From Macrostomum lignano (taxonomy: Eukaryota), in contig NIVC01001181.1 of NCBI GenBank assembly GCA_002269645.1, forward strand, positions 124,001 through 188,000: a stretch of 64,000 nucleotides of DNA, written 5' to 3'. Shown piece after piece: positions 31,430 to 64,000 of this stretch; the stretch's first letter is position 1, and each line of letters begins with the position of its first letter. A program made the translations under genes and the position numbers. Below the pieces are notes generated by a model. It was not told where the DNA came from and ran no database searches. It worked only from the letters and a program-made list of their open reading frames with translations.

Positions 31430-31590
31430 ATGAGTGCCTGCGGCGCCAAAATGATTACCTCCGGCGCCAAAATGGATGTCTACCTGTAACGCAAAAATGA
31501 GTACCTGCGGCGTAAAATGAGTGCCTATGGTGCCAAAATGAATGTCTGCCTGCGGCTCGGCGCTAAAATGAGTGCCTGCGGTGCCAAAAA
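31430..31590. repeat. Degenerate ~21-bp repeat AAAATGAGTGCCTGCGGCGCC
   Basis: Seen directly. Confidence 0.75.
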
Positions 31591-32824: not shown

Positions 32825-33140
32825 TATCACCCATTGGCTAAAGCCCCCACCCCACCCCTAGAGAATCCTAGAATATACAGCTAGACTAAGATAAGAGAAA
32901 CTCATCGCTCATTGGCTAGAGACCCCACCCCACCCCAGAGAATACGAAAATGTACAGCTAGACTAAGATAAGAGAAACTCCTTTTCGCTCATTGGCTAGA
33001 GACCCCACCCTACCCCACCCTAGTTCTAGAAAATCCCAGAATGTACAGCTAGACTAAGATAAGAGAAGCCCCTTATCGCTCATTGGCTGGAGCCCCCACC
33101 CCACCCCAGTTCCAGGGAATCCGAGAATGTACGCAGCTAA
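32825..33140. repeat. ~77-90-bp repeat, 3-4 copies (CAGCTAGACTAAGATAAGAGAA...CTCATTGGCT...CCCCACCC)
   Basis: Anchor CAGCTAGACTAAG recurs near 32879, 32956 and 33046. Confidence 0.8.
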
Positions 33141-33303
33141 AAGCAACTACTCGATGTTGGTTGGCTAAACCCAGTCACTCTTATCGAAGTTGGTGATACA
33201 CAAAAAATGTTAACAATTGTTGAGTTTGTGTTTCTTGTTTAAAGAAGTGCCTTTCAAAATATCAATTTTTAAGACATTTTAAGACAGCTGAATTCATTTA
33301 TAA

Positions 33304-35712
33304 TCAGCCCTCCATTAGCGACTGCTCGCACACCTGACGCTCGAGCGAGAATCGATAAGCGTACTCTGCTTCAATTTGTTCTGGCGACTTGATAACAATT
33401 TCATTTAAATTAAAACCGCCAATCGTGGCCGCTTCGGAGCTGGCGTTCCCGCCCCAGCGTCGGCTGAGCTCGAATGGTATGCCGGACAATGGGTCGCGAA
33501 TTTTGCTCGGCTGCCGACTCGGCGGAGGTCGCTGCGGCTGTACATTGATCTGTTGGACTCCGGCTCCTCGCTGCTGCTGCGACTGCGACTTCTGCTGCTC
33601 CACCGGGCCGTTCTTGACGCACAGAGTGAAACTGTTGAACTCGCTGTTTGCGGGTGGCAATTGGATGAACTAGTTACCGAGTGCCTGCTGTCTATCTCAT
33701 ATCTCATCTCACCCCTATCCTGCTCTCAATCTCACCCTATCCTACTCTCGATCTCACCCTATCCTATTCTCAAACTCACCCTATCCTTACTCTCAATCTC
33801 ACCCTATCCTTACTCTCAATCTCACCCTATCCTTCTCTCAATCTCACCCTATCCTTACTCTCAATCTCACCCTATCCTTCTCTCAATCTCACCCTATCCT
33901 TACTCTCAATCTCACCCTATCCTTCTCTCAATCTCACCCTATCCTTACTCTCAAACTCACCCTATCTTTCTCTCAATCTCACTCTATCCTATTCTCAAAC
34001 TCACCCTATCCTTACTCTCAAACTCACCCTATCCTATTCTCAATCTCACCCTATCCTTACTCTCAATCTCACCCTATCCTATTCTCAAACTCACCCTATC
34101 CTTACTCTCAATCTCACCCTATTCTATTCTCAAAGTCACCCTATCCTTACTCTCAATCTCACTCTGTCCTATTCTCAAACTCACCCTTTCCTTACTCTCA
34201 ATCTCACCCTATCCTATTCTCAATCTCACCCTATCCTTACTCTCAATCTCACCCTATCCTATTCTCAAACTCACCCTATCCTTACTCTCAATCTCACCCT
34301 ATCCTTCTCTCAATCTCACCCTATCCTTCTCTCAATCTCACCCTATCCTATTTTCAAACTCACCCTATCCTTACTCTCAATCTCACCCTATCCTTACTCT
34401 CAATCTGACCCTATCCTTGCTCTCAATCTCACCCTATCCTTACTCTCAATCTCACCCTATCCTACTCTCAATCTCACCCTATCTTTACTCTCAATCTCAC
34501 CCTATCCTATTCTCAAAATCACCCTATCCTTACTCTCAATCTCACCCTATCCTTCTCTCAAACTCACCCTATCCTTACTCTCAATCTCACCCTATCCTAT
34601 TCTCAAACTCACCCTATCCTTACTCTCAATCTCACCCTATCCTTCTCTCAATCTCACCCTATCCTTCTCTCAATCTCACCCTATCCTATTCTCAAACTCA
34701 CCCTATCCTTACTCTCAATCTCACCCTATCCTTCTCTCAATCTCACCCTATCCTTCTCTCGATCTCACCCTATCCTTCTCTCAATCTCACCCTATCCTTC
34801 TCTCGATCTCACCCTATCCTACTCTCAATCTCACCCGATGACAGCGTATCCGGCGGGAGGGCGCTTCTGCTTCCCCAGCAGAATGATGTCATTAATAGCC
34901 GAAGTGGCCTCGGATTTGCGCTGCATCTTCACAGCCAGTTGCTTCTTTTTCAACGCCTTCTCCTCTGCAATAAAGAAACGAATATAAAACACTTGATTTA
35001 CTACTTAATAAAGCAGTAGAAAATACTGCAAAAATTACAAATACGCATAAAATGGGAAAAGCACACAAAATAGTTTATAGCTTATAAAAATTTAGAGTTT
35101 ATAAAGTTTCGAGTTTATGAAGTTTCAGGTTCGTGAAGTTTCGAGTTTATGAAGTTTCGTGTTCATGAAGTTTCGAGTTTTTTAAGTTTCGAGTTCATAA
35201 AGTTTCGTGTTCATGAAATTTCGAGTTTTTGAAGTCTCAAGTTCATGAAGTTTCGAGTTCATGAAGTTTCGAGTTCATGAAGTTTCGTGTTAATGAAGTT
35301 TCGTGTTTTTGAAGTTTCGAGTTTATAAAGTTTCGAGTTTATAAAGTTTTGAGTTCATGAAGTAACTCACGAGTATCGCAGGTGGTCTCAATGATAGTGA
35401 ACTGATCCGGCACATCCATCGGGCCATTGCAGACGGCTAAATCGCAGAGCACCTGGTCGGAGTCCTGATAACTAACACACAGGTAGCGCGTCACTCGCCG
35501 ACTCAAGAAACCGTCTTTCCACAGGTCGGCATCTTCGCGACTGTCGTGAGTCTGCGTAATCTGTAAGAGAAATTTAATTAATTAATTTACTCTTTTACAA
35601 TTGGGAAGTTAAATAGTTGTAAGCTTGACCGCATTATACTACTTACAGGCGAGTATTTCGGTGGCGCTTTGTTCGGATCCGTGACAATTTTCAGGTCCGT
35701 TATGTTGGCCAT
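33304..35712 (-). CDS. MVB12: MVB12/FAM125 ESCRT-I subunit (MABP + UMA domains), 241 aa; join(complement 35712..35647,35560..35371,34964..34835,33643..33304)
   Basis: Four exons join in frame. MABP motif DADLWKDGFLSRRVTRYLC, KALKKKQLAVK, AINDIILLGKQKRPPAGYAVIGEFNS; UMA motif LSGIPFEL...IVIKSPEQIEAEYAYRFSLERQV. Donors GTAAGT, GTGAGT, GTGAGA. Confidence 0.9.
33690..34834. repeat. 22-23-bp minisatellite CTCTCAATCTCACCCTATCCTTA filling MVB12 intron 3
   Basis: Seen directly; begins exactly at the exon-3 donor on the minus strand. Confidence 0.95.
35095..35362. repeat. 16-bp minisatellite GAAGTTTCGAGTTCAT in MVB12 intron 2
   Basis: Seen directly. Confidence 0.9.
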
Positions 35713-35909
35713 CGGATTGAGTAGATATTTTTTGTAGCTGTCAATCACTCAGACAAAAGGAAAGATATCTAGTTTGACCAATTTTGATAGCTAGCTGTAT
35801 TGGAGACCTAAACCGTGGGGGTGAATCTGAAAGTAAAATTCAATATTTTTAATAATCACGTTTTTTCTCAAGCTAGCTATTCCCAATATCAACATTACCC
35901 TTTAACTGG

Positions 35910-36855
35910 CCTGTCCAATCTGACTACTAGTCCATCTAATCTGACTACTAGTCCATCTAATCTGACTACTAGTCCATCTAATCTGACTACTAGTCCATCT
36001 AATCTGACTACTAGTCCATCTAATCTGATTACTAGTCCATCTAATCTGACTACTAGTCCATCTAATCTGACTACTAGTCTATCTAATCTGACTACTAGTC
36101 TATCCAATTTGATTACTAGTCCATCCAATCTGATTACTAGTCTATTCAATCTGATTACTAGTCTATCCAATCTGATTACTAGTCTATCCAATCTGATTAC
36201 TAGTCTATCCAATCTGATTACTAGTCTATCCAATCTGATTACTAGTCTATCCAATCTGATTACTAGTCTATCCAATCTGACTACTAGTCTATCCAATCTG
36301 ACTACTAGTCTATCCAAGCTGATTACTAGTCCATCCAATCTGATTACTAGTCTATCCAATCTGATTACTAGTCTATCCAATCTGATTACTAGTCTATCCA
36401 ATCAGATTACTAGTCTATCCAATCAGATTACTAGTCCATCCAATCTGATTACTAGTCCATCCAATCTGATTACTAGTCTATCCAATCTGATTACTAGTCT
36501 ATCCAATCTGATTACTAGTCTATTCAATCTGATTACTAGTCTATTCAATCTGACTACTAGTCTATCCAATCTGACTACTAGTCTATCCAATCTGATTACT
36601 AGTCTATCCAATCTGATTACTGGTCCATCCAATCTGATTACTAGTCTATCCAATCTGATTACTAGTCTATCCAATCTGATTACTAGTCTATTCAATCTGA
36701 TTACTAGTCTATTCAATCTGACTACTAGTCTATCCAATCTGATTACTGGTCCATCCAATCTGATTACTAGTCTATCCAATCTGACTACTAGTCTATCCAA
36801 GCTGATTACTAGTCCATCCAATCTGATTACTAGTCTATCCAATCTGATTACTACC
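35910..36855. repeat. 21-bp minisatellite CCAATCTGATTACTAGTCTAT
   Basis: Seen directly; stop-free, giving the SNLITSL and RLDRLVI ORFs. Confidence 0.95.
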
Positions 36856-37322
36856 ATTTGCGATCTGCAAAAAATTAAAGAACAACACAAGCAACTGGAT
36901 GCCAAATATTTCCAATCAGAAATTGAGTAAAAAAACGAGACAAAAATGCTACTTACGCACGCGTGATAACGCTTACTTCTGAATTACATCAACATTACCC
37001 TTACCAACTAACTGCAAATTAGTATTCCTTAGTATTTGTTTTCTTCTATTATTAAAAAACGTACCCAATGTCCTCTGTCTTCTGAAGAACAAAATAGATT
37101 AACAATCAGTCAATCAACATACGGAATTAGCGAATGGGAAACGTTATTTTAACGATAAGAGGAACGCGTTTAGATATATTACTGTCAGTAGTTTTATAGC
37201 GAATCGATTGATTTTGCCGAGTCTAGAACAGATATTAATTATTAACCGAATTTTAGTCTATTAAAGTTGACAGCAGGCGTTTGTTTGTTTAAAGACACGT
37301 CAGCTTCAGACGCCAGAGGCTT

Positions 37323-38336
37323 TCAATTGAACTTGCAATTAGAAAAGTCCATCTCCGGATGTTGCTTCATAAATTTCTGCAATATTTCATTCTTCTTTTG
37401 ATCTTCGCTAGTTGGCAAGCCGAGCTCCTTCTGCCTCTGGTCGTACATAATCTTCTCAACAATTGATCTAGTCTCGCCGTCCAGATCGCTCAGCTTAGAA
37501 TTCTCCGGTTCAACTTTTTTAGTGTTAATAACCGGATCAGTGGTGACAACTTGACCCCACCATTCCATCTGGTTGACCTTCTCTAGGCAGATAATCAGAG
37601 TCTTGCCCTCGTCCAGAGTCCAAGTGGACTCGTCCGGTTTAATATGATGAGCCAATTGGCCGTGCAGAATCGGCGGCTGATTGCGCAATCCGGCGGTTAT
37701 GTCAGACTTGGTAATGCTCACAGTCAGATCCCGGCCCTTCACCTTCACTGGCAGTGGGACTCGAATCTCAAGATCCCTCAGCGTCTGTGTCCAACTGTAA
37801 TTCTCATAGTCGCCTCCATTGCCAGCATTCGGCTTCATCTTGCCCTTGTCCTCAGCGGATTCTTCCTCTTCAGCGGCATCGCCGTCGCCTTCTTTTTTCT
37901 TTGTAGTAGTAGCAGTAGCCGCCTCGCCATTGTCCGACTCTTTCGCCGTTGTTGATGAAGACGCCGGGGCATCATTCGATTTTTTGTTCTTTTCGGCGTC
38001 TAATTCTTTCTGAAGCTGTTCCGCTTCGGCGTCAGTTAGTTCTTGGACTCGCGGGTCGCCGGCGGCGGCTTTTGCGGCGGCCTGTTTCTCGCGTTTTTTA
38101 GCTTCAGCCTCGGCTTTCTCTTTGGCTCGCTTCTCTTCAGCCTGGCGTTTGTGCAGTCGGAATGCTTTGAGCACGAGCTGTTCGCAGTCTTTGCTGCCCT
38201 GACCAACATAGAAATCTGTGCGCCTAGCCAAGAAGCCAAAGAATGTGTCCAGGATTTCAACTACGCCGCCCTCTTTGCACTGCTCGACAATTGTCATGTA
38301 GACATTGTCGCAGTAGGATTGCTTCTGCTCATCCAT
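37323..38336 (-). CDS. NUDC: Nuclear migration protein NudC, intronless (ATG at 38336 preferred; ORF track starts at 38369)
   Basis: [22 protein letters not shown]; CS/p23 domain [15 protein letters not shown]...[10 protein letters not shown]; [10 protein letters not shown]...[14 protein letters not shown]...[11 protein letters not shown]. Confidence 0.96.
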
Positions 38337-39821
38337 TGTGTTGTATACTGCTTTTTTTGCTTGCTTCAAGATTTTACATGCATTTTGTTATGAAGAATGA
38401 AGTTGAAATAGATACTTGCAATATACTTAATAAGACATTTCAGCTAGTTCACTATCCATTGATTTCTTTGTTAAGCAAATCACCCTGGGTGATTAGTAGG
38501 TCAAGTTATAAGACTTTAGCTTTACTTAGGTTTGGGTATTTTTATTTGTGCAAAAAACTATCCTTAATTATTAAATTGAATGGCACACAGATTTTTTGAC
38601 TATTTTTGTACTGCTATACATTATACACAGCATTTTGAAAGAAAATACCAATAACTACCATGACATGTTTTGCAAAAAAACAAATTTTTAGGATTGATTT
38701 GCATGATTTATAGTATAATTGTTTACTATAAAACAATGGACTATAGTTTCAGCCAAAAAAGCAAATTATAGATGATAGTATACTACATTTGTATTTATTA
38801 GATGATTCTTACTATCATAAGTATTTGTTAAATATATTTATTAATATTAATATTAAAACAAATTTACATTTAATGAAACAAGCTTGATTTATATTTCCTC
38901 CATAACATTATTCTTCTACTAAACTTTTTTTTAAAGTTAGATTATTGTATTATTGATTTATATGCATTTAATTGACCCATAAGCCAATTTATACCCTTTA
39001 CCACTACTATTGTCTTTATTGCATTTATTTTATATTGTCTATTTTCTTTTGCATTAATGATTGTAATGATAAATTATGAAAGTTATAAAAGCTATCAAGT
39101 ACAGGATGTGCATAAAATGAACTAACTCTTTTGAGAAAAAATAACTAAAAGCTAGGCTTATAGACAAAAAAAGACACCTTTAAAATTGGGTACATAAAAT
39201 TAATGCTTATAAAGAATCTTTTTAACCTTAAATTTCCTATCTCTATACCTTAGCAATTGATTTTTAATTTCTATTTCTATGAACTGTGGTTTTTAGAAGC
39301 TAAGAATTATAGCTTATAGAAAATTATACATAAGAATTATTTTTAGAACTTGAATACATCTCCATATCTCTAGTTAAGATTAGATATATACTACATTAGT
39401 GCGTCCAAAAAGTTCTTAGACACCTCTCCTATCTTTGCATCTGTTCAATCGATTTTTATAAAAATTGACACAAACATGGACCTATATGTAATCAATTCAG
39501 TGTTAAAGTTTCAGCTTAATTGGGTTGACACAGCAAAAGCAATTGATCATTTACTGAGGAACCTACAAAATTAGCAATACGATTTTAAACTCAACAAAAT
39601 TTGAAAGTTAACAAGCAAACAGTTCAAACTGACAAGTCCAAAACTTCAAAAATAGATCACCAATTGTGAAAATCTTCAGAAGAATATTCATTCCATCGAA
39701 TGTGCTTGTCATATTGCATTGGCAACTCCTCATCCTCAATTCATGCCAATCCCTAGGTGTCACTCTGATCAGCCTCTCAGTAGCCACTTGCAGCTTGGGG
39801 AAGCTGGCAAACCGCTAGGGG

Positions 39822-43945: not shown

Positions 43946-45034
43946 AAAGATAGACAAAACGCAGGCTTATGTAGCATCGAGATAAAGAATTCTCTAATCC
44001 AGTCTCCGGGATTAGAAAGAGACGCGCGGCGCCACAGAGTCTGTCAGCTTCACGCTGCCGCGCCCTTCCCTAATCCGGCTCAGTAAAACCCGAAGTCCCC
44101 AGTCCGCCAGAAGGCCCAGCGTCAGACAAAGACCTCATCACCATCGGTCTGTTTCCCCTCCTTGAGGAGAAACTCAAAGCCAGCTGCTCACAAAGAGTCT
44201 CCCGCACTAAGGGGCAGAGGGGGGAAAGAAAGTTTTACAACAGATGTTGCAGATATTGCTGAAAGAAGAGAGAGAAGAGTAGCTATAGAAAAAATTGGTA
44301 GGCAGTTTTTGTTTATTAAGACAGTTTTGAGACTGCCAATCAGTTGACTGCGTGGGGGACCTCCATTTGGGCCGTTCTCAAAGTCTGCCATCAACTATTG
44401 GTCGAATTCAAGCTTTGTAATGAGCCTTTCTTAGAAATCTTCCCAGTTAGTTGGCTCCGCAGCTTCACCGATTCGTCTTCTATTCTAAGAATTGACCCCC
44501 CTTTCTAGAATTTTCCGCAACCGCGCCCAAAGCCTCGACCTACTTCCTTAAAAATCCCCTTTTCGTCAATTCCCCTCCGTCAACCCCCAAACCCCCTATT
44601 TATTCCAACTCGTCTATTCCGGTTAACTCGAACTTATATCCCAATTTATCCCCACCGACACAAAGCTCGGTGGCCCAGCCTCGCTATAATTTGATCTGAC
44701 CTCTCGACTCTCTTCCTCTCATCTCCTGGAAATCCTCGAAGACTGACTGAAGGGAGAGCGAGAAGTTTCTAAGAAACGAAGTTGAACTCAGCGGAGGCAT
44801 TGTATAGAGCTCAATTGGATGCAGCGATGTATGCATAAAGTGCAATGCACTTATTAGGGTGCAGTAGAAGGTTCTCTGCATTCTGCATTTCTGTATTCAG
44901 TTGGCTTTTGCACTGTTAGAAAGCTCAGTAATTGATAAACCATTACTAGTCTGCCAAAAATATGCGTCAGTTTTTCATGCTGCACAAGGAATTAAATTTA
45001 TCAATGGACAGAACAAGATACACTAGATCTGAGA

Positions 45035-47345
<2,311 letters not shown>

Positions 47346-48920
47346 ATGCAGACAGGGAGTGAAACAGCCTATTCTCAGTGTCTATACTCTATGTGGAACC
47401 GCAGCGACAGCCTCACTGATGCATGAGCTGCTCAAGCCGAGCTCAAAAACATCCTATCTTGAAGCCAACAAGCCTTCCAACTTCCTTACTTAACTCCAGT
47501 TTTGCATCAAATTTCTTTGTTTATCAGTCAAGTTTTAAGGCGCCACAAAACTTTGTTCAGTATGCGCGGCATGCCTCGGGAAGGAAGACGGAAAAAAATG
47601 TAGGAAAAATGCAAAAAGCCAAATCTCACAGAACTGGGAGATGCAACGCCTTTTGGGATTTTTTCTGTTTTCCATAAAGCTTTTTTTACTCCTCCAGAGA
47701 TATTCTTCTTGAATGGAACCATATTCTCTGGGACTGGCAGGTGAAGGCTGCGATGTGACCTCCTATGACTTCACCTGGATGGAGATCCATAGGGAGATGA
47801 GCTCAATATAGGCATAGTCTTTGTTCTTGAGCTCGCTTTCTTTGCAAACTCAGCTCCGCATGCATTCAGTGTGAGAATTAAATTTCTGTGTCAGCAAAGT
47901 TGACAGGTCCTGGGAGCTGACCTCTCTCTGCGGGACAATTGAAAAGGTCACCAACCTAATGCATCGATGATGTTGATTGAAGCAACAAAGTCTTTGAATT
48001 CATCATATTGATTGGCCTTTTGACTGGCGAGAATATTTAGCAAGATTATAACTGAATAAAAGACGCGTCGTGTGCCTTATCTAAGAAATAGTGTGACCCT
48101 AAGTTGACCTCTACTGTCACTACGTGAACCACGTGGGCTTTTCACGAAGTTTGTGAACAGGTCTTTGTTTGTGTGCTGACGTCATTTCAAACTCTGATGC
48201 GGTTTGGTTTGAAGTCGAAAATTGAAAGTCTCTGAACTCTCTTCTTGTCTTACTGGATCGGACTCGACCACTGGGACATCAGGGCGATAAGCTATGACTC
48301 ATTGGTCATTTCAGCTTCTCAAGACATCGTTACCTTCTTGGGCCCAAACTGGCATCTCTCCAACGTTTTCAGGCCTGGGAACTCCTGCCGTCTTGTCTGC
48401 TGGCCTAAGAGCTACTTAAGGGGAGCAACCAGCCTCCTGGTACACCTCCTGGACTTTCTGGATGGGGACCGCGACGCTCAACATTACCTGATCTCCCTGA
48501 TAAGGTCAGCGAACATCCGGATGCCCGGAACCCCTTGCAGCTGGGTTTAAGTCATTTCCCTCTAACGTTCTCTCTCTTTTCTTCTCAAATTCTCAATATT
48601 CCTTATTCCACTTTCATCCGACAGTCTACTATCAGTAGTATTCAATAATTAGCTCTCCATTCGCCGCTGGAACCCTTCCTCAACTCTCATTGGTTCCCGC
48701 GGTAGGGACGCCTAGACCCATAGTCCCCTGAACGCCTTACTGCCCTTCCCTCAACCCCTCCCCTCCCCAGGCAATGGGCATCGTATTTGAGTGGATCAAG
48801 GACGCCAAGAGAATGCGAAAGCCGGCAAAAGCCACAGCGCAAAACAGAATCAGAATTAGTTCGCATAGAAAATCAAAGCGCATAACTGAGAACGGCACAC
48901 AGTCGCGAACAGACGCCGAC

Positions 48921-49784
48921 ATGACCACCATGCGCAAGCTGGAATCCGAGCTCAAGTGCGGCCTGTGCAGGCGGTGGCTCTGCCAGCCGCTGCTCCTGCC
49001 GTGCGGCCATTCGCTCTGCCAGTCCTGCTGCTCCAGCATCCTGCTGCTCCCAGCCGACGAAGTCGCCTCGTTGACAGGCGGCGGTGACAGCTCCGACCAG
49101 ATGTCGGTCGCGTCGGAAGCCGACTCGGGCGTGTCTTTGCCGACGTCCACAGCATCGGGATCGGGATCTTCAAGACCTGGCAGCAGCTGCTACCAGCTGC
49201 ACCAGCAGCAGCACCATCAGCAGCACCTTCTTGGGGCCGTCGCCTCGCCATCATCGCCATCAGCTGTTGGGTTCCTCTGCCCGACCTGTCGACGCCCAGT
49301 GCTGCTACCTGGCGGCATCGATCGGAGCAGCTCGTTAAGAAATCTGTTGCCAAGGAACTTGGCTTTAGAACGGCTGGTTGGGAAATTTGCACAGCAGAGT
49401 CATCAGAGCCAGTCGGATCTGCACCAGCCTCAGCAGCAGCAGCTCTGCCAGCTCTGCGATCCGTGCGAGACCGGACAGTCGCCTCTGCCGGCTGAGCTGG
49501 TCTGCGAACAGTGCGAGATGTACTATTGCCAGCGCTGCGCCGAGAAATCACATCCTTCATCGGTGTCGGCGCCGAAGCACAATCTGCAGCCGGCTAGCTG
49601 CGGGCGGGAGCTGCTGTTGCAGAAGCAAGCTAGAAGAAGCTCAGTCTGCCAGGAGCACCGGCAGGAGACGCTGGGCTCCTACTGCTTGGCCTGCCGAGGT
49701 CCCGTGTGCCCGCTGTGCGCCCAGACTGTCAGGCACCAGGGACACGAGATTGTGCCGCTGCAGACAGCTTGCAAGTCTGCCAAG
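48921..49784 (+). CDS. TRIM9: TRIM9/TRIM67 (MADD-2)-like E3 ligase, RING + two B-box exon; downstream exons not found in the window (alternative upstream ATG at 48774)
   Basis: ELKCGLC...LPCGHSLCQSC...CPTC split RING with the DQMSVASEADSG insert typical of TRIM9; B-box1 CQLC...CEQCEMYYC...H; B-box2 CQEH...YCLAC..PVC..C...HQGH; donor AAG|GTGAGT at 49785. Confidence 0.88.
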
Positions 49785-49799
49785 GTGAGTTTTTGAGGG

Positions 49800-50195
49800 C
49801 ATAGAGTGACTAGTTTGTGAGGTCATGGAATGACCAGTTTGTGAGGTCATAGAGTGACTAGTTTGTGAGGTCATAGAGTGACCAGTTTGTGAGGTCATAG
49901 AGTGACCAGTTTGTGAGGTCATAGAGTGACCAGTTTGTGAGGTCATCGAGTGACCAGTTTGTGACTTCATAGAATGACTAGTTTGTGAGGTCATAGAGTG
50001 ACTAGTTTGTGAGGTTATAGAGTGACCAGTTTGTGAGGTCATAGAGTGACCAGTTTGTGAGGTCATATAGTGACCAGTTTGTGAGGTCATCGAGTGACCA
50101 GTTTGTGAGGTCATATAATGACCAGTTTATGATTTCATAGAATGACCAGTCTGTGAATTTGTAGAATTACCAGTTTCGGAGTTCACAGTATGACC
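49800..50195. repeat. 24-bp minisatellite GTTTGTGAGGTCATAGAGTGACCA just after the TRIM9 donor
   Basis: 8-aa periodicity (MTSQTGHS) in a spurious ORF. Confidence 0.93.
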
Positions 50196-50916
50196 AGTCC
50201 GTGACAATCCATATATCATCATAGTCGAGCTCGCCATATGACTGGAATTTCATGATCAAGCCTTTTGCTTTGTTCAGCTTTATCTATTGTTTGCAAGCTG
50301 TTCATGCGCCAAGTTTTAAGTGAGGAATTCACCGCTTGCAACACCTCAAATGCGCGAGCGTCTCCAATATTAGAGATATACATCTATTCCTGTTCTGAGT
50401 TCACACGTCATTGAACCATAAATTCGCACATACAGATAGATCTGTCACAGGTATCTATCTGTTTGCGAAATTCCTAAGCTTGTCCAGTTTGCGTAATACC
50501 CTCAGGGGGGTTGCCGAGGGGTGTTGGGCCAGCCCAATAGCTCCAACCCCTCTAGACTAAAACCGAAAATGACTCGCGAAAGAATTTATAAGGGATGAGT
50601 AATCAAAAATCGCCCCCCCTTCCCAACCTAAACGTATTGAAGTGGCCATTCTTACAGCTTTAAGAATCTTTTAAACCCCTTCTGGAAACCTTTGGAAAAG
50701 AGATTTAGACTGGAGCCGAGCTGAGGAAGACTGACCCCGGCCCATTGTGCAATCTGTGTCCACTCTTCATTCTCGGGCTTGAGTGGTTTCAAATTGCTAT
50801 ATAGAAAATTATTCTTCGGAGAGTTTTGAGGGACTGGAGTTTGGCGCTGGAGACCCTGGGTTGCGCAATGCGATCCGCTTGAGATAGAAAAGCTAAGGCT
50901 ATTCAATATGCTATCT

Positions 50917-52500
<1,584 letters not shown>

Positions 52501-52576
52501 TTCATAAGGCAGTTTGAAACTGCAAACCACGCACTCGGAAGATATTGAAGGTTACCAGTTGTCGAATGTTCGAAAA

Positions 52577-52617
52577 AAACCGATATTTCGGCCCAGACTG
52601 GGCCTTCGTCAGGGTTT
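52577..52617 (-). ncRNA. Minimal type I hammerhead ribozyme, copy 1
   Basis: Minus strand AAACC-CUGACGA-A-GGCCC(AGUCU)GGGCC-GAAA-UA-UC-GGUUU: full core, stem I AAACC/GGUUU, stem II, palindromic AUAU stem III, predicted AUC cleavage at + coordinate 52582. Confidence 0.8.
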
Positions 52618-53906
52618 ATTTATTCGGGTTTAAAAACAAATATATTGGCAGTGAAGTTATTGTAACATAATTTCAATATATATATATGCGACTTTTGGGG
52701 GTGCACTGAGCAGTGTTGAGTAAAGATGTGTACGCATAATTAGTTAAAAACGTGAGTTGAAGCACGCTGATTGGTTAAAGATTGGCAGCTTAAAGCCTTG
52801 CACAAAAAATATTAAAGATGTTAGGTGCTATAGAAAAACAGATTTAGAGCGTAGAAGTGTATGAATAAGCATCTTGAAAAGTTCAACAAATAAGTTATTT
52901 ACGCCCGTAGAATTGAGAACAAATATTAAATTAAAACAGAGCACTGAGAACTTTGAGAACTGAGAAAATTGAGTCGCCAGGCAGGCCACTAGTTGCAGTT
53001 GGCGGCGTCTGGTCACAGATCGCCGCCTGCACAGCCCCTGGTCACAGGCGACTGGGCACTGCAGATCAGTTGAGGCTAGATTATCAGTAGTAGTAGCACT
53101 AGTAGTTGCAGTAGTAGCTCGTAGTAGTAGTAATGGAAGTAGTAGTAGTACAAGTATTAGTAGAGTAGTAGTAGAGCAGTCGTAGGCGTAGTCGTAGTAG
53201 AGACGTACTGGTAAGCAGTTATTTGAAGTAGCCAGGCAGGCCACTAGTCGCAGTTGGCGGCGTCTGGTCACAGATCGCCGCCTGCACAGCCCCTGGTCAC
53301 AGGCGACTGGGCACTGCGGATCAGTTGAAGCTAGATTATCAGTAGTAGTAGCACTAGTAGTTGCAGTAGTAGCTCGTAGTAGTAGTAATGGAAGTAGTAG
53401 TAGTACAAGTATTAGTAGAGTAGTAGTAGAGCAGTCGTAGGCGTAGTCGTAGTAGAGACGTACTGGTAAGCAGTTATTTGAAGTAGCCAGGCAGGCCACT
53501 AGTCGCAGTTGGCGGCGTCTGGTCACAGATCGCCGCCTGCACAGCCCCTGGTCACAGGCGACTGGGCACTGCGGATCAGTTGAAGCTAGATTTTCAGTAG
53601 TAGTAGCACTAGTAGTTGCAGTAGTAGTAGTAGTGGTAGTAGAGTAGTAGTAGTACAGTCGTAGTCGTAGCCGTAGTCGTAGTAGTGTCGTGCGTCTTAA
53701 ATATTCAGCTGCAGAAATAGTACTCTTGCTTATCCCAAGTAGATTTTTGGCGGAGAATAGCTCGTATACGAAGATATTTTGTTGACAAACATGGCGAGCC
53801 TCAATAATAGTCCGGTCCTGGGTACAGATATTCATAAGGCAGTTTGAAACTGCAAACCACGCACTCGGAAGATATTGAAGGTTACCAGTTGTCGAATGTT
53901 CGAAAA

Positions 53907-53947
53907 AAACCGATATTTCGGCCCAGACTGGGCCTTCGTCAGGGTTT
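53907..53947 (-). ncRNA. Minimal type I hammerhead ribozyme, copy 2
   Basis: Identical to copy 1. Confidence 0.8.
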
Positions 53948-55235
53948 ATTTATTCGGGTTTAAAAACAAATATATTGGCAGTGAAGTTATTGTAACATAA
54001 TTTCAATATATATATATGCGACTTTTGGGGGTGCACTGAGCAGTGTTGAGTAAAGATGTGTACGCATAATTAGTTAAAAACGTGAGTTGAAGCACGCTGA
54101 TTGGTTAAAGATTGGCAGCTTAAAGCCTTGCACAAAAATATTAAAGATGTTAGGTGCTATAGAAAAACAGATTTAGAGCGTAGAAGTGTATGAATAAGCA
54201 TCTTGAAAAGTTCAACAAATAAGTTATTTACGCCCGTAGAATTGAGAACAAATATTAAATTAAAACAGAGCACTGAGAACTTTGAGAACTGAGAAAATTG
54301 AGTCGCCAGGCAGGCCACTAGTTGCAGTTGGCGGCGTCTGGTCACAGATCGCCGCCTGCACAGCCCCTGGTCACAGGCGACTGGGCACTGCAGATCAGTT
54401 GAGGCTAGATTATCAGTAGTAGTAGCACTAGTAGTTGCAGTAGTAGCTCGTAGTAGTAGTAATGGAAGTAGTAGTAGTACAAGTATTAGTAGAGTAGTAG
54501 TAGAGCAGTCGTAGGCGTAGTCGTAGTAGAGACGTACTGGTAAGCAGTTATTTGAAGTAGCCAGGCAGGCCACTAGTCGCAGTTGGCGGCGTCTGGTCAC
54601 AGATCGCCGCCTGCACAGCCCCTGGTCACAGGCGACTGGGCACTGCGGATCAGTTGAAGCTAGATTATCAGTAGTAGTAGCACTAGTAGTTGCAGTAGTA
54701 GCTCGTAGTAGTAGTAATGGAAGTAGTAGTAGTACAAGTATTAGTAGAGTAGTAGTAGAGCAGTCGTAGGCGTAGTCGTAGTAGAGACGTACTGGTAAGC
54801 AGTTATTTGAAGTAGCCAGGCAGGCCACTAGTCGCAGTTGGCGGCGTCTGGTCACAGATCGCCGCCTGCACAGCCCCTGGTCACAGGCGACTGGGCACTG
54901 CGGATCAGTTGAAGCTAGATTTTCAGTAGTAGTAGCACTAGTAGTTGCAGTAGTAGTAGTAGTGGTAGTAGAGTAGTAGTAGTACAGTCGTAGTCGTAGC
55001 CGTAGTCGTAGTAGTGTCGTGCGTCTTAAATATTCAGCTGCAGAAATAGTACTCTTGCTTATCCCAAGTAGATTTTTGGCGGAGAATAGCTCGTATACGA
55101 AGATATTTTGTTGACAAACATGGCGAGCCTCAATAATAGTCCGGTCCTGGGTACAGATATTCATAAGGCAGTTTGAAACTGCAAACCACGCACTCGGAAG
55201 ATATTGAAGGTTACCAGTTGTCGAATGTTCGAAAA

Positions 55236-55276
55236 AAACCGATATTTCGGCCCAGACTGGGCCTTCGTCAGGGTTT
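55236..55276 (-). ncRNA. Minimal type I hammerhead ribozyme, copy 3
   Basis: Identical to copy 1. Confidence 0.8.
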
Positions 55277-56565
55277 ATTTATTCGGGTTTAAAAACAAAT
55301 ATATTGGCAGTGAAGTTATTGTAACATAATTTCAATATATATATATGCGACTTTTGGGGGTGCACTGAGCAGTGTTGAGTAAAGATGTGTACGCATAATT
55401 AGTTAAAAACGTGAGTTGAAGCACGCTGATTGGTTAAAGATTGGCAGCTTAAAGCCTTGCACAAAAAATATTAAAGATGTTAGGTGCTATAGAAAAACAG
55501 ATTTAGAGCGTAGAAGTGTATGAATAAGCATCTTGAAAAGTTCAACAAATAAGTTATTTACGCCCGTAGAATTGAGAACAAATATTAAATTAAAACAGAG
55601 CACTGAGAACTTTGAGAACTGAGAAAATTGAGTCGCCAGGCAGGCCACTAGTTGCAGTTGGCGGCGTCTGGTCACAGATCGCCGCCTGCACAGCCCCTGG
55701 TCACAGGCGACTGGGCACTGCAGATCAGTTGAGGCTAGATTATCAGTAGTAGTAGCACTAGTAGTTGCAGTAGTAGCTCGTAGTAGTAGTAATGGAAGTA
55801 GTAGTAGTACAAGTATTAGTAGAGTAGTAGTAGAGCAGTCGTAGGCGTAGTCGTAGTAGAGACGTACTGGTAAGCAGTTATTTGAAGTAGCCAGGCAGGC
55901 CACTAGTCGCAGTTGGCGGCGTCTGGTCACAGATCGCCGCCTGCACAGCCCCTGGTCACAGGCGACTGGGCACTGCGGATCAGTTGAAGCTAGATTATCA
56001 GTAGTAGTAGCACTAGTAGTTGCAGTAGTAGCTCGTAGTAGTAGTAATGGAAGTAGTAGTAGTACAAGTATTAGTAGAGTAGTAGTAGAGCAGTCGTAGG
56101 CGTAGTCGTAGTAGAGACGTACTGGTAAGCAGTTATTTGAAGTAGCCAGGCAGGCCACTAGTCGCAGTTGGCGGCGTCTGGTCACAGATCGCCGCCTGCA
56201 CAGCCCCTGGTCACAGGCGACTGGGCACTGCGGATCAGTTGAAGCTAGATTTTCAGTAGTAGTAGCACTAGTAGTTGCAGTAGTAGTAGTAGTGGTAGTA
56301 GAGTAGTAGTAGTACAGTCGTAGTCGTAGCCGTAGTCGTAGTAGTGTCGTGCGTCTTAAATATTCAGCTGCAGAAATAGTACTCTTGCTTATCCCAAGTA
56401 GATTTTTGGCGGAGAATAGCTCGTATACGAAGATATTTTGTTGACAAACATGGCGAGCCTCAATAATAGTCCGGTCCTGGGTACAGATATTCATAAGGCA
56501 GTTTGAAACTGCAAACCACGCACTCGGAAGATATTGAAGGTTACCAGTTGTCGAATGTTCGAAAA

Positions 56566-56606
56566 AAACCGATATTTCGGCCCAGACTGGGCCTTCGTCA
56601 GGGTTT
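56566..56606 (-). ncRNA. Minimal type I hammerhead ribozyme, copy 4
   Basis: Identical to copy 1. Confidence 0.8.
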
Positions 56607-57895
56607 ATTTATTCGGGTTTAAAAACAAATATATTGGCAGTGAAGTTATTGTAACATAATTTCAATATATATATATGCGACTTTTGGGGGTGCACTGAGC
56701 AGTGTTGAGTAAAGATGTGTACGCATAATTAGTTAAAAACGTGAGTTGAAGCACGCTGATTGGTTAAAGATTGGCAGCTTAAAGCCTTGCACAAAAAATA
56801 TTAAAGATGTTAGGTGCTATAGAAAAACAGATTTAGAGCGTAGAAGTGTATGAATAAGCATCTTGAAAAGTTCAACAAATAAGTTATTTACGCCCGTAGA
56901 ATTGAGAACAAATATTAAATTAAAACAGAGCACTGAGAACTTTGAGAACTGAGAAAATTGAGTCGCCAGGCAGGCCACTAGTTGCAGTTGGCGGCGTCTG
57001 GTCACAGATCGCCGCCTGCACAGCCCCTGGTCACAGGCGACTGGGCACTGCAGATCAGTTGAGGCTAGATTATCAGTAGTAGTAGCACTAGTAGTTGCAG
57101 TAGTAGCTCGTAGTAGTAGTAATGGAAGTAGTAGTAGTACAAGTATTAGTAGAGTAGTAGTAGAGCAGTCGTAGGCGTAGTCGTAGTAGAGACGTACTGG
57201 TAAGCAGTTATTTGAAGTAGCCAGGCAGGCCACTAGTCGCAGTTGGCGGCGTCTGGTCACAGATCGCCGCCTGCACAGCCCCTGGTCACAGGCGACTGGG
57301 CACTGCGGATCAGTTGAAGCTAGATTATCAGTAGTAGTAGCACTAGTAGTTGCAGTAGTAGCTCGTAGTAGTAGTAATGGAAGTAGTAGTAGTACAAGTA
57401 TTAGTAGAGTAGTAGTAGAGCAGTCGTAGGCGTAGTCGTAGTAGAGACGTACTGGTAAGCAGTTATTTGAAGTAGCCAGGCAGGCCACTAGTCGCAGTTG
57501 GCGGCGTCTGGTCACAGATCGCCGCCTGCACAGCCCCTGGTCACAGGCGACTGGGCACTGCGGATCAGTTGAAGCTAGATTTTCAGTAGTAGTAGCACTA
57601 GTAGTTGCAGTAGTAGTAGTAGTGGTAGTAGAGTAGTAGTAGTACAGTCGTAGTCGTAGCCGTAGTCGTAGTAGTGTCGTGCGTCTTAAATATTCAGCTG
57701 CAGAAATAGTACTCTTGCTTATCCCAAGTAGATTTTTGGCGGAGAATAGCTCGTATACGAAGATATTTTGTTGACAAACATGGCGAGCCTCAATAATAGT
57801 CCGGTCCTGGGTACAGATATTCATAAGGCAGTTTGAAACTGCAAACCACGCACTCGGAAGATATTGAAGGTTACCAGTTGTCGAATGTTCGAAAA

Positions 57896-57936
57896 AAACC
57901 GATATTTCGGCCCAGACTGGGCCTTCGTCAGGGTTT
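57896..57936 (-). ncRNA. Minimal type I hammerhead ribozyme, copy 5
   Basis: Identical to copy 1. Confidence 0.8.
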
Positions 57937-59357
57937 ATTTATTCGGGTTTAAAAACAAATATATTGGCAGTGAAGTTATTGTAACATAATTTCAATATAT
58001 ATATATGCGACTTTTGGGGTGCACTGAGCAGTGTTGAGTAAAGATGTGTACGCATAATTAGTTAAAAACGTGAGTTGAAGCACGCTGATTGGTTAAAGAT
58101 TGGCAGCTTAAAGCCTTGCACAAAAAATATTAAAGATGTTAGGTGCTATAGAAAAACAGATTTAGAGCGTAGAAGTGTATGAATAAGCATCTTGAAAAGT
58201 TCAACAAATAAGTTATTTACGCCCGTAGAATTGAGAACAAATATTAAATTAAAACAGAGCACTGAGAACTTTGAGAACTGAGAAAATTGAGTCGCCAGGC
58301 AGGCCACTAGTTGCAGTTGGCGGCGTCTGGTCACAGATCGCCGCCTGCACAGCCCCTGGTCACAGGCGACTGGGCACTGCAGATCAGTTGAGGCTAGATT
58401 ATCAGTAGTAGTAGCACTAGTAGTTGCAGTAGTAGCTCGTAGTAGTAGTAATGGAAGTAGTAGTAGTACAAGTATTAGTAGAGTAGTAGTAGAGCAGTCG
58501 TAGGCGTAGTCGTAGTAGAGACGTACTGGTAAGCAGTTATTTGAAGTAGCCAGGCAGGCCACTAGTCGCAGTTGGCGGCGTCTGGTCACAGATCGCCGCC
58601 TGCACAGCCCCTGGTCACAGGCGACTGGGCACTGCGGATCAGTTGACCAGTCCGTGACAATCCATATATCATCATAGTCGAGCTCGCCATATGACTGGAA
58701 TTTCATGATCAAGCCTTTTGCTTTGTTCAGCTTTATCTATTGTTTGCAAGCTGTTCATGCGCCAAGTTTTAAGTGAGGAATTCACCGCTTGCAACACCTC
58801 AAATGCGCGAGCGTCTCCAATATTAGAGATATACATCTATTCCTGTTCTGAGTTCACACGTCATTGAACCATAAATTCGCACATACAGATAGATCTGTCA
58901 CAGGTATCTATCTGTTTGCGAAATTCCTAAGCTTGTCCAGTTTGCGTAATACCCTCAGGGGGTTGCCGAGGGGTGTTGGGCCAGCCCAATAGCTCCAACC
59001 CCTCTAGACTAAAACCGAAAATGACTCGCGAAAGAATTTATAAGGGATGAGTAATCAAAAATCGCCCCCCCTTCCCAACCTAAACGTATTGAAGTGGCCA
59101 TTCTTACAGCTTTAAGAATCTTTTAAACCCCTTCTGGAAACCTTTGGAAAAGAGATTTAGACTGGAGCCGAGCTGAGGAAGACTGACCCCGGCCCATTGT
59201 GCAATCTGTGTCCACTCTTCATTCTCGGGCTTGAGTGGTTTCAAATTGCTATATAGAAAATTATTCTTCGGAGAGTTTTGAGGGACTGGAGTTTGGCGCT
59301 GGAGACCCTGGGTTGCGCAATGCGATCCGCTTGAGATAGAAAAGCTAAGGCTATTCA

Positions 59358-60904
<1,547 letters not shown>

Positions 60905-60981
60905 ATTCATAAGGCAGTTTGAAACTGCAAACCACGCACTCGGAAGATATTGAAGGTTACCAGTTGTCGAATGTTCGAAAA

Positions 60982-61022
60982 AAACCGATATTTCGGCCCA
61001 GACTGGGCCTTCGTCAGGGTTT
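60982..61022 (-). ncRNA. Minimal type I hammerhead ribozyme, copy 6
   Basis: Identical to copy 1. Confidence 0.8.
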
Positions 61023-62602
61023 ATTTATTCGGGTTTAAAAACAAATATATTGGCAGTGAAGTTATTGTAACATAATTTCAATATATATATATGCTACTTT
61101 TGGGGGTGCACTGAGCAGTGTTGAGTAAAGATGTGTACGTATAATTAGTTAAAAACGTGAGTTGAAGCACGCTGATTGGTTAAAGATTGGCAGCTTAAAG
61201 CCTTGCACAAAAAATATTAAAGATGTTAGGTGCTATAGAAAAACAGATTTAGAGCGTAGAAGTGTATGAATAAGCATCTTGAAAAGTTCAACAAATAAGT
61301 TATTTACGCCCGTAGAATTGAGAACAAATATTAAATTAAAACAGAGCACTGAGAACTTTTCAAAAAGAAGTGCAAGTAAATAGATGTTATTACATAAACA
61401 GTAAATAAATTGAGTCGCCAGGCAGGCCACTAGTTGCAGTTGGCGGCGTCTGGTCACAGATCGCCGCCTGCACAGCCCCTGGTCACAGGCGACTGGGCAC
61501 TGCAGATCAGTTGAGGCTAGATTATCAGTAGTAGTAGCACTAGTAGTTGCAGTAGTAGCTCGTAGTAGTAGTAATGGAAGTAGTAGTAGTACAAGTATTA
61601 GTAGAGTAGTAGTAGAGCAGTCGTAGGCGTAGTCGTAGTAGAGACGTACTGGTAAGCAGTTATTTGAAGTAGCCAGGCAGGCCACTAGTCGCAGTTGGCG
61701 GCGTCTGGTCACAGATCGCCGCCTGCACAGCCCCTGGTCACAGGCGACTGGGCACTGCAGATCAGTTGAGGCTAGATTATCAGTAGTAGTAGCACTAGTA
61801 GTTGCAGTAGTAGCTCGTAGTAGTAGTAATGGAAGTAGTAGTAGTACAAGTATTAGTAGAGTAGTAGTAGAGCAGTCGTAGGCGTAGTCGTAGTAGAGAC
61901 GTACTGGTAAGCAGTTATTTGAAGTAGCCAGGCAGGCCACTAGTCGCAGTTGGCGGCGTCTGGTCACAGATCGCCGCCTGCACAGCCCCTGGTCACAGGC
62001 GACTGGGCACTGCAGATCAGTTGAGGCTAGATTATCAGTAGTAGTAGCACTAGTAGTTGCAGTAGTAGCTCGTAGTAGTAGTAATGGAAGTAGTAGTAGT
62101 ACAAGTATTAGTAGAGTAGTAGTAGAGCAGTCGTAGGCGTAGTCGTAGTAGAGACGTACTGGTAAGCAGTTATTTGAAGTAGCCAGGCAGGCCACTAGTC
62201 GCAGTTGGCGGCGTCTGGTCACAGATCGCCGCCTGCACAGCCCCTGGTCACAGGCGACTGGGCACTGCGGATCAGTTGAAGCTAGATTTTCAGTAGTAGT
62301 AGCACTAGTAGTTGCAGTAGTAGTAGTAGTGGTAGTAGAGTAGTAGTAGTACAGTCGTAGTCGTAGCCGTAGTCGTAGTAGTGTCGTGCGTCTTAAATAT
62401 TCAGCTGCAGAAATAGTACTCTTGCTTATCCCAAGTAGATTTTTGGCGGAGAATAGCTCGTATACGAAGATATTTTGTTGACAAACATGGCGAGCCTCAA
62501 TAATAGTCCGGTCCTGGGTACAGATATTCATAAGGCAGTTTGAAACTGCAAACCACGCACTCGGAAGATATTGAAGGTTACCAGTTGTCGAATGTTCGAA
62601 AA

Positions 62603-62643
62603 AAACCGATATTTCGGCCCAGACTGGGCCTTCGTCAGGGTTT
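62603..62643 (-). ncRNA. Minimal type I hammerhead ribozyme, copy 7
   Basis: Identical to copy 1. Confidence 0.8.
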
Positions 62644-64000
62644 ATTTATTCGGGTTTAAAAACAAATATATTGGCAGTGAAGTTATTGTAACATAATTTC
62701 AATATATATATATGCTACTTTTGGGGGTGCACTGAGCAGTGTTGAGTAAAGATGTGTACGTATAATTAGTTAAAAACGTGAGTTGAAGCACGCTGATTGG
62801 TTAAAGATTGGCAGCTTAAAGCCTTGCACAAAAAATATTAAAGATGTTAGGTGCTATAGAAAAACAGATTTAGAGCGTAGAAGTGTATGAATAAGCATCT
62901 TGAAAAGTTCAACAAATAAGTTATTTACGCCCGTAGAATTGAGAACAAATATTAAATTAAAACAGAGCACTGAGAACTTTTCAAAAAAAGTGCAAGTAAA
63001 TAGATGTTATTACATAAACAGTTGAGAACAAATATTAATTAAAACAGAGCACTCGCCATAAACAGTAAATAAATTGAGTCGCCAGGGCCACTAGTTGCAG
63101 TTGGCGGCGTCTGGTCACAGATCGCCGCCTGCACAGCCCCTGGTCACAGGCGACTGGGCACTGCAGATCAGTTGAGGCTAGATTATCAGTAGTAGTAGCA
63201 CTAGTAGTTGCAGTAGTAGCTCGTAGTAGTAGTAATGGAAGTAGTAGTAGTACAAGTATTAGTAGAGTAGTAGTAGAGCAGTCGTAGGCGTAGTCGTAGT
63301 AGAGACGTACTGGTAAGCAGTTATTTGAAGTAGCCAGGCAGGCCACTAGTCGCAGTTGGCGGCGTCTGGTCACAGATCGCCGCCTGCACAGCCCCTGGTC
63401 ACAGGCGACTGGGCACTGCAGATCAGTTGAGGCTAGATTATCAGTAGTAGTAGCACTAGTAGTTGCAGTAGTAGCTCGTAGTAGTAGTAATGGAAGTAGT
63501 AGTAGTACAAGTATTAGTAGAGTAGTAGTAGAGCAGTCGTAGGCGTAGTCGTAGTAGAGACGTACTGGTAAGCAGTTATTTGAAGTAGCCAGGCAGGCCA
63601 CTAGTCGCAGTTGGCGGCGTCTGGTCACAGATCGCCGCCTGCACAGCCCTGGTCACAGGCGACTGGGCACTGCAGATCAGTTGAGGCTAGATTATCAGTA
63701 GTAGTAGCACTAGTAGTTGCAGTAGTAGCTCGTAGTAGTAGTAATGGAAGTAGTAGTAGTACAAGTATTAGTAGAGTAGTAGTAGAGCAGTCGTAGGCGT
63801 AGTCGTAGTAGAGACGTACTGGTAAGCAGTTATTTGAAGTAGCCAGGCAGGCCACTAGTCGCAGTTGGCGGCGTCTGGTCACAGATCGCCGCCTGCACAG
63901 CCCCTGGTCACAGGCGACTGGGCACTGCGGATCAGTTGAAGCTAGATTTTCAGTAGTAGTAGCACTAGTAGTTGCAGTAGTAGTAGTAGTGGTAGTAGAG

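Follow-up and report, generated by a model that had tools for sequence, protein, structure and literature searches.

The 64,000-nt stretch of Macrostomum lignano DNA analysed here (the window; GenBank assembly GCA_002269645.1, contig NIVC01001181.1, positions 124,001 to 188,000) carries on its minus strand head-to-tail units with one predicted hammerhead ribozyme each. These units probably belong to a young, non-autonomous, retrozyme-like element family of M. lignano that depends on Penelope-like elements (PLEs) and forms arrays within (GATA)n microsatellites. The unit is 1.33–1.62 kb long and has three parts: a variable 5′ portion containing 255-nt subrepeats, a conserved module of ~340 nt on the 3′ side, closed by the hammerhead, and a tail of 81 nt.

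The hammerhead motif and the arrays of the window

The minus strand of the window holds seven exact copies of a 41-nt motif, AAACCCTGACGAAGGCCCAGTCTGGGCCGAAATATCGGTTT, of which 100 shuffles give none. The 5′ half of the motif has a helix I strand AAACC, the core C3U4G5A6C7G8A9 and one unpaired A, followed by helix II (GGCCC-AGUCU-GGGCC) with a G10.1-C11.1 pair, and the 3′ half has the core G12A13A14, the segment A15.1-U-A-U16.1, the cleavage site C17 and the second helix I strand GGUUU. The catalytic core of a minimal hammerhead ribozyme (min-HHR), CUGACGA...GAA with A15.1-U16.1 and a C at H17, is present, as are type I topology with a short helix I of 5 bp (AAACC/GGUUU), the unpaired nucleotide between A9 and 10.1 together with the G10.1-C11.1 pair (PMC4209133), and a palindromic AUAU in the place of a stable helix III. 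Such features define the min-HHRs of PLEs, with the Cercyon PLEs of the flatworm Schistosoma among the examples (PMC4209133). Judged by sequence, the M. lignano motif belongs with the type I minimal hammerheads of PLEs, having all four defining features and the full core, which is how the first-pass annotation of the window had read it. Because positions 15.2–16.2 are palindromic and there is no stable helix III, a dimer is expected to be the active form. The minimum-free-energy (MFE) structure of the 61-nt region is identical to the hammerhead fold (z = −2.4). Co-folding of two copies in ViennaRNA prefers an intermolecular helix II duplex to the AUAU dimer, a modelled result that supports a dimeric ribozyme neither way. 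Cleavage as predicted would leave 5′-OH RNA ends at GGUUUUUUU.

The Rfam models Hammerhead_1/3/II/HH9/HH10 have no match to the motif at the gathering threshold or at E<=10; since they also miss six comparable min-HHRs from metagenomes, this negative is not diagnostic. A min-HHR descriptor custom-written for the PLE-type features matches all seven copies and, in 110 kb of M. lignano sequence, this family alone. It has no match in 200 shuffles or in 440 Mb of random sequence of like composition, which makes a chance origin of the motif very unlikely; a chance motif was rejected on this specificity. The six metagenome contigs, each with a single min-HHR (L007–L012, e.g. MKWU01034307.1), come from a scan in which the core and helix II were fixed and helix I was left open. 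Helix I still pairs in all six as ACAA/UUGU, giving four compensatory pairs relative to the M. lignano motif. They have the same helix II and bulged A, with ACGU or AUGU where M. lignano has AUAU, and in L010 and L012 the hammerhead lies inside a larger inverted repeat. No open reading frame (ORF) for a reverse transcriptase (RT) was found on these contigs.

The seven motifs start at minus-strand positions 52577, 53907, 55236, 56566, 57896, 60982 and 62603 and place C17 at plus-strand coordinates 52582, 53912, 55241, 56571, 57901, 60987 and 62608, with spacings of 1330, 1329, 1330, 1330, 3086 and 1621 nt, exactly as first reported. AATAAA, likewise noted at first reading upstream of each site, occupies unit positions 1287–1292 in every unit, 37–42 nt before the cleavage site. 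The unit map was drawn from self-BLAST; the output of a repeat finder run on 44–64 kb was dominated by microsatellites. The features of the arrays are as follows.

52577..52617, minus strand: hammerhead copy 1, exact motif match, hammerhead as MFE fold (z = −2.4) and descriptor match; predicted cleavage 3′ of the C at plus-strand 52582
53907..53947, minus strand: hammerhead copy 2, exact and descriptor match
55236..55276, minus strand: hammerhead copy 3, exact and descriptor match
56566..56606, minus strand: hammerhead copy 4, exact and descriptor match
57896..57936, minus strand: hammerhead copy 5, exact and descriptor match
60982..61022, minus strand: hammerhead copy 6, the last of array B, exact and descriptor match
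62603..62643, minus strand: hammerhead copy 7, exact and descriptor match
52501..58646, minus strand: array A, from the self-BLAST map and junction sequences
50921..52500, minus strand: (TATC)n in the sense orientation, (GATA)n on the plus strand, adjoining the 3′ end of array A
58640..59402, no strand assigned: copy of the unique flank 50186–50948 (763 nt, 99.7% identity), marking a tandem segmental duplication
59373..60905, minus strand: second (TATC)n/(GATA)n microsatellite, adjoining the 3′ end of array B
60906..64000, minus strand: array B, with an 81-nt tail (60906–60986), a full unit (60987–62607) and a next unit that runs past the end of the window
54298..54986, minus strand: example of the 255-nt subrepeats, 2.7 copies, each with an (ACT)n-rich stretch and GC-rich hairpins, e.g. 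GGCGGCG...CGCCGCC

The seven motifs had been taken for a single tandem array. Their units do stand head to tail, but they form two arrays within an 8454-nt segmental duplication, and the 3086-nt spacing is not a unit because the flank copy and the second (GATA)n separate arrays A and B. In the sense order, array A begins with a 5′-truncated unit (58646–57901, starting at unit position 584), continues with four full units of 1329/1330 nt (57900–52582; mutual identity 99.9–100% by self-BLAST) and closes with the 81-nt 3′ tail (52581–52501), which ends in ...CTTATGAATATCT. Its unit type, with a 36-nt deletion and 2.7 subrepeats, is private to this array. The full unit of array B measures 1621 nt, carries 3.7 subrepeats and has a 36-nt insertion that the units of array A lack; its type is also present at other loci. 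Self-comparison shows the block of array, microsatellite and flank to be tandemly duplicated with a period of 8454 nt. Of the two breakpoints of the duplication, one lies where a 24-bp minisatellite ends and one within an element subrepeat; arrays A and B differ in unit type despite the duplication. The (TATC)n at 50921–52500 is either the target microsatellite or else the element's own tail. Internal subrepeats, claimed at first reading, are confirmed, with a length of 255 nt, in the units, which have a GC content of 44% and carry one type I hammerhead each, without long terminal repeats (LTRs), primer-binding site (PBS) or polypurine tract (PPT).

Insertion junctions and the conserved 3′ module

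Three further loci in M. lignano, two traced through gene products found in a protein search with the unit ORF and the third through an exhaustive search, add ten copies of the motif, seven of them exact. L005 (NIVC01000001.1) has five hammerheads, L006 (NIVC01002743.1) has four, one with a 1-nt deletion in helix II, and L013 (NIVC01001007.1) has a single 5′-truncated copy of a diverged subfamily with ~80% identity. Copies of the main subfamily are 98–100% identical across loci, and the flanks of L005 and L006, the two loci compared, are unlike those of the window.

At all four loci (TATC)n surrounds the copies. Wherever the 3′ junction is visible, at five places, it is of one kind (two in the window, two in L005, one in L013; the 3′ end of L006 falls in an assembly gap), with ...ATATCT joined to (ATCT)n 77–84 nt past the cleavage site. 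The 5′ junctions differ: (TCTA)n meets CAGACGCC in L005, (ATCT)nATTTAAACC meets TGTGACCAGACG in L006, (TCTA)nTC meets GACTACGACT in L013, and in the window unique flank meets AACTGATCC. The truncation point at the 5′ side thus varies among loci while the 3′ end stays constant. PLE insertions are known for 5′ truncation, partial tandems, a bias towards microsatellites and a terminal tail (PMC8557442, Craig et al.), and the M. lignano copies have the truncation, the partial tandems, the microsatellite context and the tail of autonomous PLEs. A fixed 3′ end with varying 5′ truncation in a microsatellite is the signature of RNA-mediated, PLE-like (target-primed) insertion. Since some junctions are DNA-level duplicates (L005 repeats one 5′ junction, and the window carries the segmental duplication), the independent insertions are few, perhaps four.

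Two observations on these loci stand apart. The 5′ truncation points of L005 (2458 and 5833) and of L006 (15604) are separated by 6 nt and fall in the loop of a subrepeat hairpin, GGCGGCG...CGCCGCC, which could reflect a preferred RT stop or shared ancestry. One unit of L005 is interrupted at 7514–8740 by a ~1.2-kb insert resembling a miniature inverted-repeat transposable element, with terminal inverted repeats CAGTGTTGGGCAAGTTACT... and ...GTGCCCAACACTG and an 8-bp target duplication, CTTACCAG; it is hAT-like.

The diverged copy in L013 retains the same ends as the main family and gives a measure of which parts of the unit are conserved. Its subrepeats have a period of 214 nt, against 255 nt in the main family, and 78–82% identity to them; the junction region has 72% identity and the 81-nt tail 76%. 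In the 340 nt upstream of the hammerhead identity rises to 93%, and 40 of the 41 positions of the hammerhead itself are identical, the single change lying at the distal end of helix II.

53912..54290, minus strand: example of the conserved 3′ module, unit positions ~950–1329; 93–98% identity to L013, against 72–82% elsewhere

The module has CCAATCAG, then a TATATATATA run 88 nt on, then AATAAA and, at its end, the hammerhead. It may be the functional module of the element, possibly combining a promoter like that of a PLE pseudo-LTR with the ribozyme and an RT recognition site.

The junctions also bear on whether the repeats spread as DNA. In that case they would be a satellite, a 1.3-kb repeat tied to (GATA)n and multiplied by segmental duplication, unequal exchange or reinsertion of extrachromosomal circles, in which the hammerhead is a fossil or an accident. 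Such a satellite would readily give the 8454-nt tandem duplication of array, microsatellite and flank in the window, the repeated 5′ junction of L005, the 99.9–100% identity of the private units of array A and the changes of subrepeat number by slippage. It does not explain why a fixed 3′ end is combined with varying 5′ truncation, as in retrotransposition, why the flanks of L005 and L006 are unrelated to those of the window, or why a diverged subfamily at an unrelated locus (L013) retains the 3′ end and an intact hammerhead core. An accidental hammerhead is further at odds with the empty descriptor scan of 440 Mb. A satellite of this sort is unlikely.

No RT (scanned for as Y/F-x-DD in open stretches of more than 120 codons) or GIY-YIG motif was found in the window, L005 or L006, in keeping with the absence of both from the window noted at first reading, and the published Mlig repeat table has no PLE line. 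The units might nevertheless be the ends (pseudo-LTR or untranslated region) of an autonomous PLE with full-length, RT-encoding copies at other genomic sites, in which case there would be no separate non-autonomous family. PLE hammerheads do reside in pseudo-LTRs, and truncated PLEs are thought to have left behind most of the min-HHRs present in genomes (PMC4209133). There is also a resemblance between animal retrozymes and the pseudo-LTRs of PLEs (bioRxiv 10.64898/2026.07.22.740005), and the scan for RT and GIY-YIG covered three loci. Ten complete units at three loci, however, join 3′ to 5′ with no RT ORF between their hammerheads, and arrays of this kind would require a longer element to be truncated repeatedly at an identical point. 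This origin of the units is quite improbable, and a non-autonomous family using PLE enzymes remains the preferred explanation.

The sense ORF, gene models and surroundings

Besides the hammerhead, the units have a long ORF in the sense orientation, as the first-pass annotation had noted, of 335 or 432 aa depending on the unit.

54157..55164, minus strand: example of the 335-aa sense ORF; its ATG, unit position 77, falls within the 3′ tail

The frame of this ORF has three stops per unit, against 22–27 in the other two sense frames. An open stretch of 203 codons, the length after removal of two subrepeat periods, is reached by one in 5000 dinucleotide shuffles, and a purely compositional ORF was rejected by this test. 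The 36-nt and 255-nt length variants both keep the reading frame. The product has no Pfam match, and searches of 5.8 billion proteins and of 1.84 billion cluster representatives gave homologues in M. lignano only; exact look-ups of both ORF versions (335 and 432 aa), and of the NudC ORF with a TTG start described below, returned no record. The AlphaFold model has a mean predicted local distance difference test (pLDDT) score of 42.8, with no confident fold. The ORF is intact in six of the ten full units and broken in four. Against L013, which has lost the ATG, substitutions number 27/21/29 by codon position, 27 being synonymous and 50 non-synonymous, and many indels are not multiples of 3. Because its ATG lies inside the 3′ tail of the element, the ORF exists solely across unit junctions. 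The sense ORF shows no constraint at the protein level, nor at the codon level against L013, and is probably non-coding despite its length.

These data weigh on three further explanations. If the arrays were tandem small intronless genes, each would have its ATG at position 77, a Thr/Leu/Arg/Cys-rich product of 335–432 aa, a ~200-nt 3′ untranslated region and AATAAA, and the hammerhead would be incidental or would aid 3′-end or intercistronic processing. Trans-splicing could use a TTTGCAG acceptor that precedes the ATG by 19 nt, GenBank annotates hypothetical proteins over the units, and the scarcity of stops, the rarity of so long an open stretch among shuffles and the frame-keeping variants all fit a gene. 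The want of a Pfam match and of homologues elsewhere, the low pLDDT, the broken copies, the spread of substitutions over the three codon positions, the 50 non-synonymous against 27 synonymous changes, the frame-breaking indels, the loss of the ATG in L013 and the placing of that ATG in the 3′ tail, which makes the ORF depend on unit junctions, do not, and tandem genes are highly improbable. The ORF could instead belong to a protein-coding retrozyme, in which unit RNAs would be released by the min-HHR and circularised. The junction-spanning ORF, complete only on circles or multimers, would then be translated, and its Arg/Cys-rich product would bind RNA and work in cis while PLEs retrotranspose the element. 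We regard this as very doubtful; if true, it would link retrozymes and delta-like agents.

An endogenised circular RNA replicon with a ribozyme, viroid-like or delta-like and reverse-transcribed as multimers, would also combine a hammerhead with a long ORF and leave head-to-tail multimeric copies, and a unit of 1.3–1.6 kb is within the range of hepatitis delta virus (~1680 nt; PMC7761336). Such replicons have ribozymes in both polarities and a rod-like fold; here the Rfam and descriptor scans yielded a ribozyme in one polarity only, the predicted unit fold is branched and poorly paired, and the ORF is unconstrained and of no Pfam family. The fixed 3′ end and the microsatellite context fit a retroelement, and a replicon origin is extremely unlikely. 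A tRNA-like part was not found by ARAGORN.

Transcription of the units is indicated indirectly by gene models. The GenBank annotation of Mlig_3_7 was built from RNA-seq assemblies (PMC5730564), and the models BOX15_Mlig029014g1 (L006) and BOX15_Mlig001677g1 (L013) run over units on the hammerhead-sense strand; as an indicator of sense RNA they are indirect, since multi-mapping reads are possible. BOX15_Mlig029014g1 (L006:10001–16085) is chimeric, with host exons spliced over 3.8 kb of (ATCT)n into the 5′-truncated first unit of L006, and ends at the stop codon of the unit ORF. The chimera is probably an annotation artefact or an exonisation of the element. In the Mlig_3_7 annotation, the 'hypothetical proteins' over the units can be flagged as mis-annotated, together with this one chimeric model.

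The repeats of the window had been described as antisense to TRIM9. A TRIM-type exon does lie upstream of them.

48774..49796, plus strand: TRIM-type exon (RING and two B-boxes), with MID1 closest among solved structures

Neither the label TRIM9 nor an intronic position of the repeats could be confirmed. The 24-bp minisatellite, at 49788–50198, directly adjoins this exon, and 2.3 kb of (AGAC)n occupies 45032–47344. Minisatellites are abundant elsewhere in the window (1–9000 and 29000–36900) and create spuriously long ORFs in either orientation. Long exons without interruption mark apparent host genes at 9197–14984 (plus), 21619–23160 (plus), 27784–28275 (plus) and 37323–38369 (minus); read by eye, translations of host genes suggest an Ig-domain/kinase-like protein, a cation-efflux (ZnT-like) transporter and an IscA-like protein. 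The gene at 37323–38369 was confirmed by search as NudC, and its sequence is matched exactly on contig NIVC01001181.1 of GCA_002269645.1, the Mlig_3_7 genome (PMC5730564). Its best named match, from the ostracod Notodromas monacha, is 603 aa long and has a bit score far above those of other animals although the identity is just 48%, a peculiarity of this entry.

A proposed mechanism and comparison with known systems

A retrozyme-like element that borrows PLE enzymes could arise and spread as follows. The sense strand would be transcribed, possibly from a CCAAT/TATA-like part of the conserved module acting as a PLE pseudo-LTR promoter does, and hammerheads dimerising through their AUAU segments would cut the multimers into unit-length RNA. 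A PLE RT/GIY-YIG endonuclease supplied in trans would nick (GATA)n DNA, and the nicked end would pair with the (UAUC)n tail of the RNA, inherited by read-through, or with AUAUCU at positions 76–81 and prime reverse transcription. Copying of more than one unit from a multimeric or circular template would yield 5′-truncated tandem arrays, which would afterwards be reshaped at the DNA level by slippage of subrepeats, by unequal exchange and by the 8.45-kb duplication. AAUAUCU also occurs at unit positions 36–42 and 134–140, and all visible junctions use position 81; use of this position despite the other sites speaks for a tail that is inherited or for priming at one particular site. Release and circularisation of 1.33- and 1.62-kb monomers, proposed from the outset, stays a prediction, because the hammerhead is minimal, not the canonical, efficiently cleaving form of the described animal retrozymes, and the min-HHRs of PLEs cleave poorly in vitro (PMC4209133).

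Several points weigh against this account. The trans-acting PLE enzyme of M. lignano is assumed, and hammerhead self-cleavage and RNA circles are deduced from the motif. The Rfam hammerhead models fail to match the motif, the poor in vitro cutting of the min-HHRs that it resembles is on record, and a dimeric helix III of four A/U pairs is weak. Conservation of the hammerhead does not exceed that of the preceding 340 nt, and covariation within the M. lignano family is not assessable because the copies are nearly invariant. There are four loci, some with DNA-level duplicate junctions, and hence perhaps four independent insertions. Finally, the number of subrepeats varies among units within the L005 array, which simple rolling-circle copying does not predict.

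Recent activity is suggested by the 98–100% identity across loci, the intact hammerhead core and the overlapping sense gene models. M. lignano offers working transgenesis as well as RAMPAGE and RNA-seq resources (PMC5730564), so that ribozyme cleavage, large RNA circles and PLE targeting of (GATA)n are testable in vivo.

Among known systems, the hammerhead is closest to that of PLEs. Minimal hammerheads are those of PLEs and Terminons, and what they do has yet to be established (PMC7761336). Like the M. lignano motif, the min-HHRs of PLEs such as Cercyon of Schistosoma mansoni (Cervera & de la Pena 2014, PMC4209133) are of type I with a helix I of 4–5 bp, an unpaired base between A9 and G10.1, a G10.1-C11.1 pair and palindromic positions 15.2–16.2, and are expected to act as dimers; the host of Cercyon is a flatworm as well. 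The near-identity of the M. lignano copies recalls the actively invading Penelope of D. virilis (PMC4209133). The M. lignano hammerheads differ in having no RT/GIY-YIG ORF between them in the window, L005 and L006, in their spacing (1.3–1.6 kb, against ~3 kb in PLEs) and in a helix II of 5–6 bp where PLE min-HHRs have 7–8 bp. Compared with autonomous endonuclease-positive (EN+) PLEs (Craig et al. 2021, PMC8557442), the M. lignano element lacks an RT or EN ORF, is found in (GATA)n rather than (TA)n, (CA)n or (C)n, and has a tail of 81 nt instead of 30–40 bp. The Athena/Terminon PLEs (PMC6431247) similarly have a 3′-terminal hammerhead followed by a simple repeat complementary to repeat DNA at the attachment site, but there the repeat is telomeric and immediately downstream of the hammerhead, and the elements are giant, protein-coding and without endonuclease.

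In its organisation the element resembles animal retrozymes, being non-autonomous and head to tail, with one type I hammerhead per unit, a low GC content and no LTR, PBS or PPT, and with a proposed dependence on PLEs and copying beyond one unit length. Animal non-LTR retrozymes have units of 150–450 bp and canonical hammerheads (Cervera & de la Pena 2020, PMC7229834), and a preprint that derives animal retrozymes from PLE pseudo-LTRs gives consensus lengths of 51–972 bp (Li et al. 2026, bioRxiv 10.64898/2026.07.22.740005). At 1329–1621 bp the M. lignano units are larger than both, as the first-pass annotation had supposed. In place of a canonical hammerhead with contacts between the loops of helices I and II they have the minimal variant, and unlike animal retrozymes they contain 255-nt subrepeats and a long ORF and have a fixed 3′ end joined to (TATC)n. 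Unit-length circular RNA, a trait of retrozymes, is predicted for them.

The Sm-alpha SINE-like (short interspersed nuclear element-like) repeats of Schistosoma and newt satellite 2 (cited in PMC4209133) are also short repeats that carry hammerheads with a weak helix III, which act as dimers. Unlike the M. lignano family, they have units of ~330 bp and canonical hammerheads. Neither is known to be associated with microsatellites.

In the literature searched, no paper joins a hammerhead ribozyme and Macrostomum. PLE min-HHRs, tandem and 5′-truncated PLE insertions and the targeting of microsatellites by PLEs are all already described. The suggestion of an undescribed large family, either a retrozyme or PLE-derived, therefore stands in part: the copies at four loci have a PLE-like insertion signature and are non-autonomous, but the kind of element is known and the canonical hammerhead of retrozymes is absent. 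The M. lignano element is a new example of that kind, large, (GATA)n-targeted and apparently young, and it extends the size range of the non-autonomous elements of animals that bear hammerheads.

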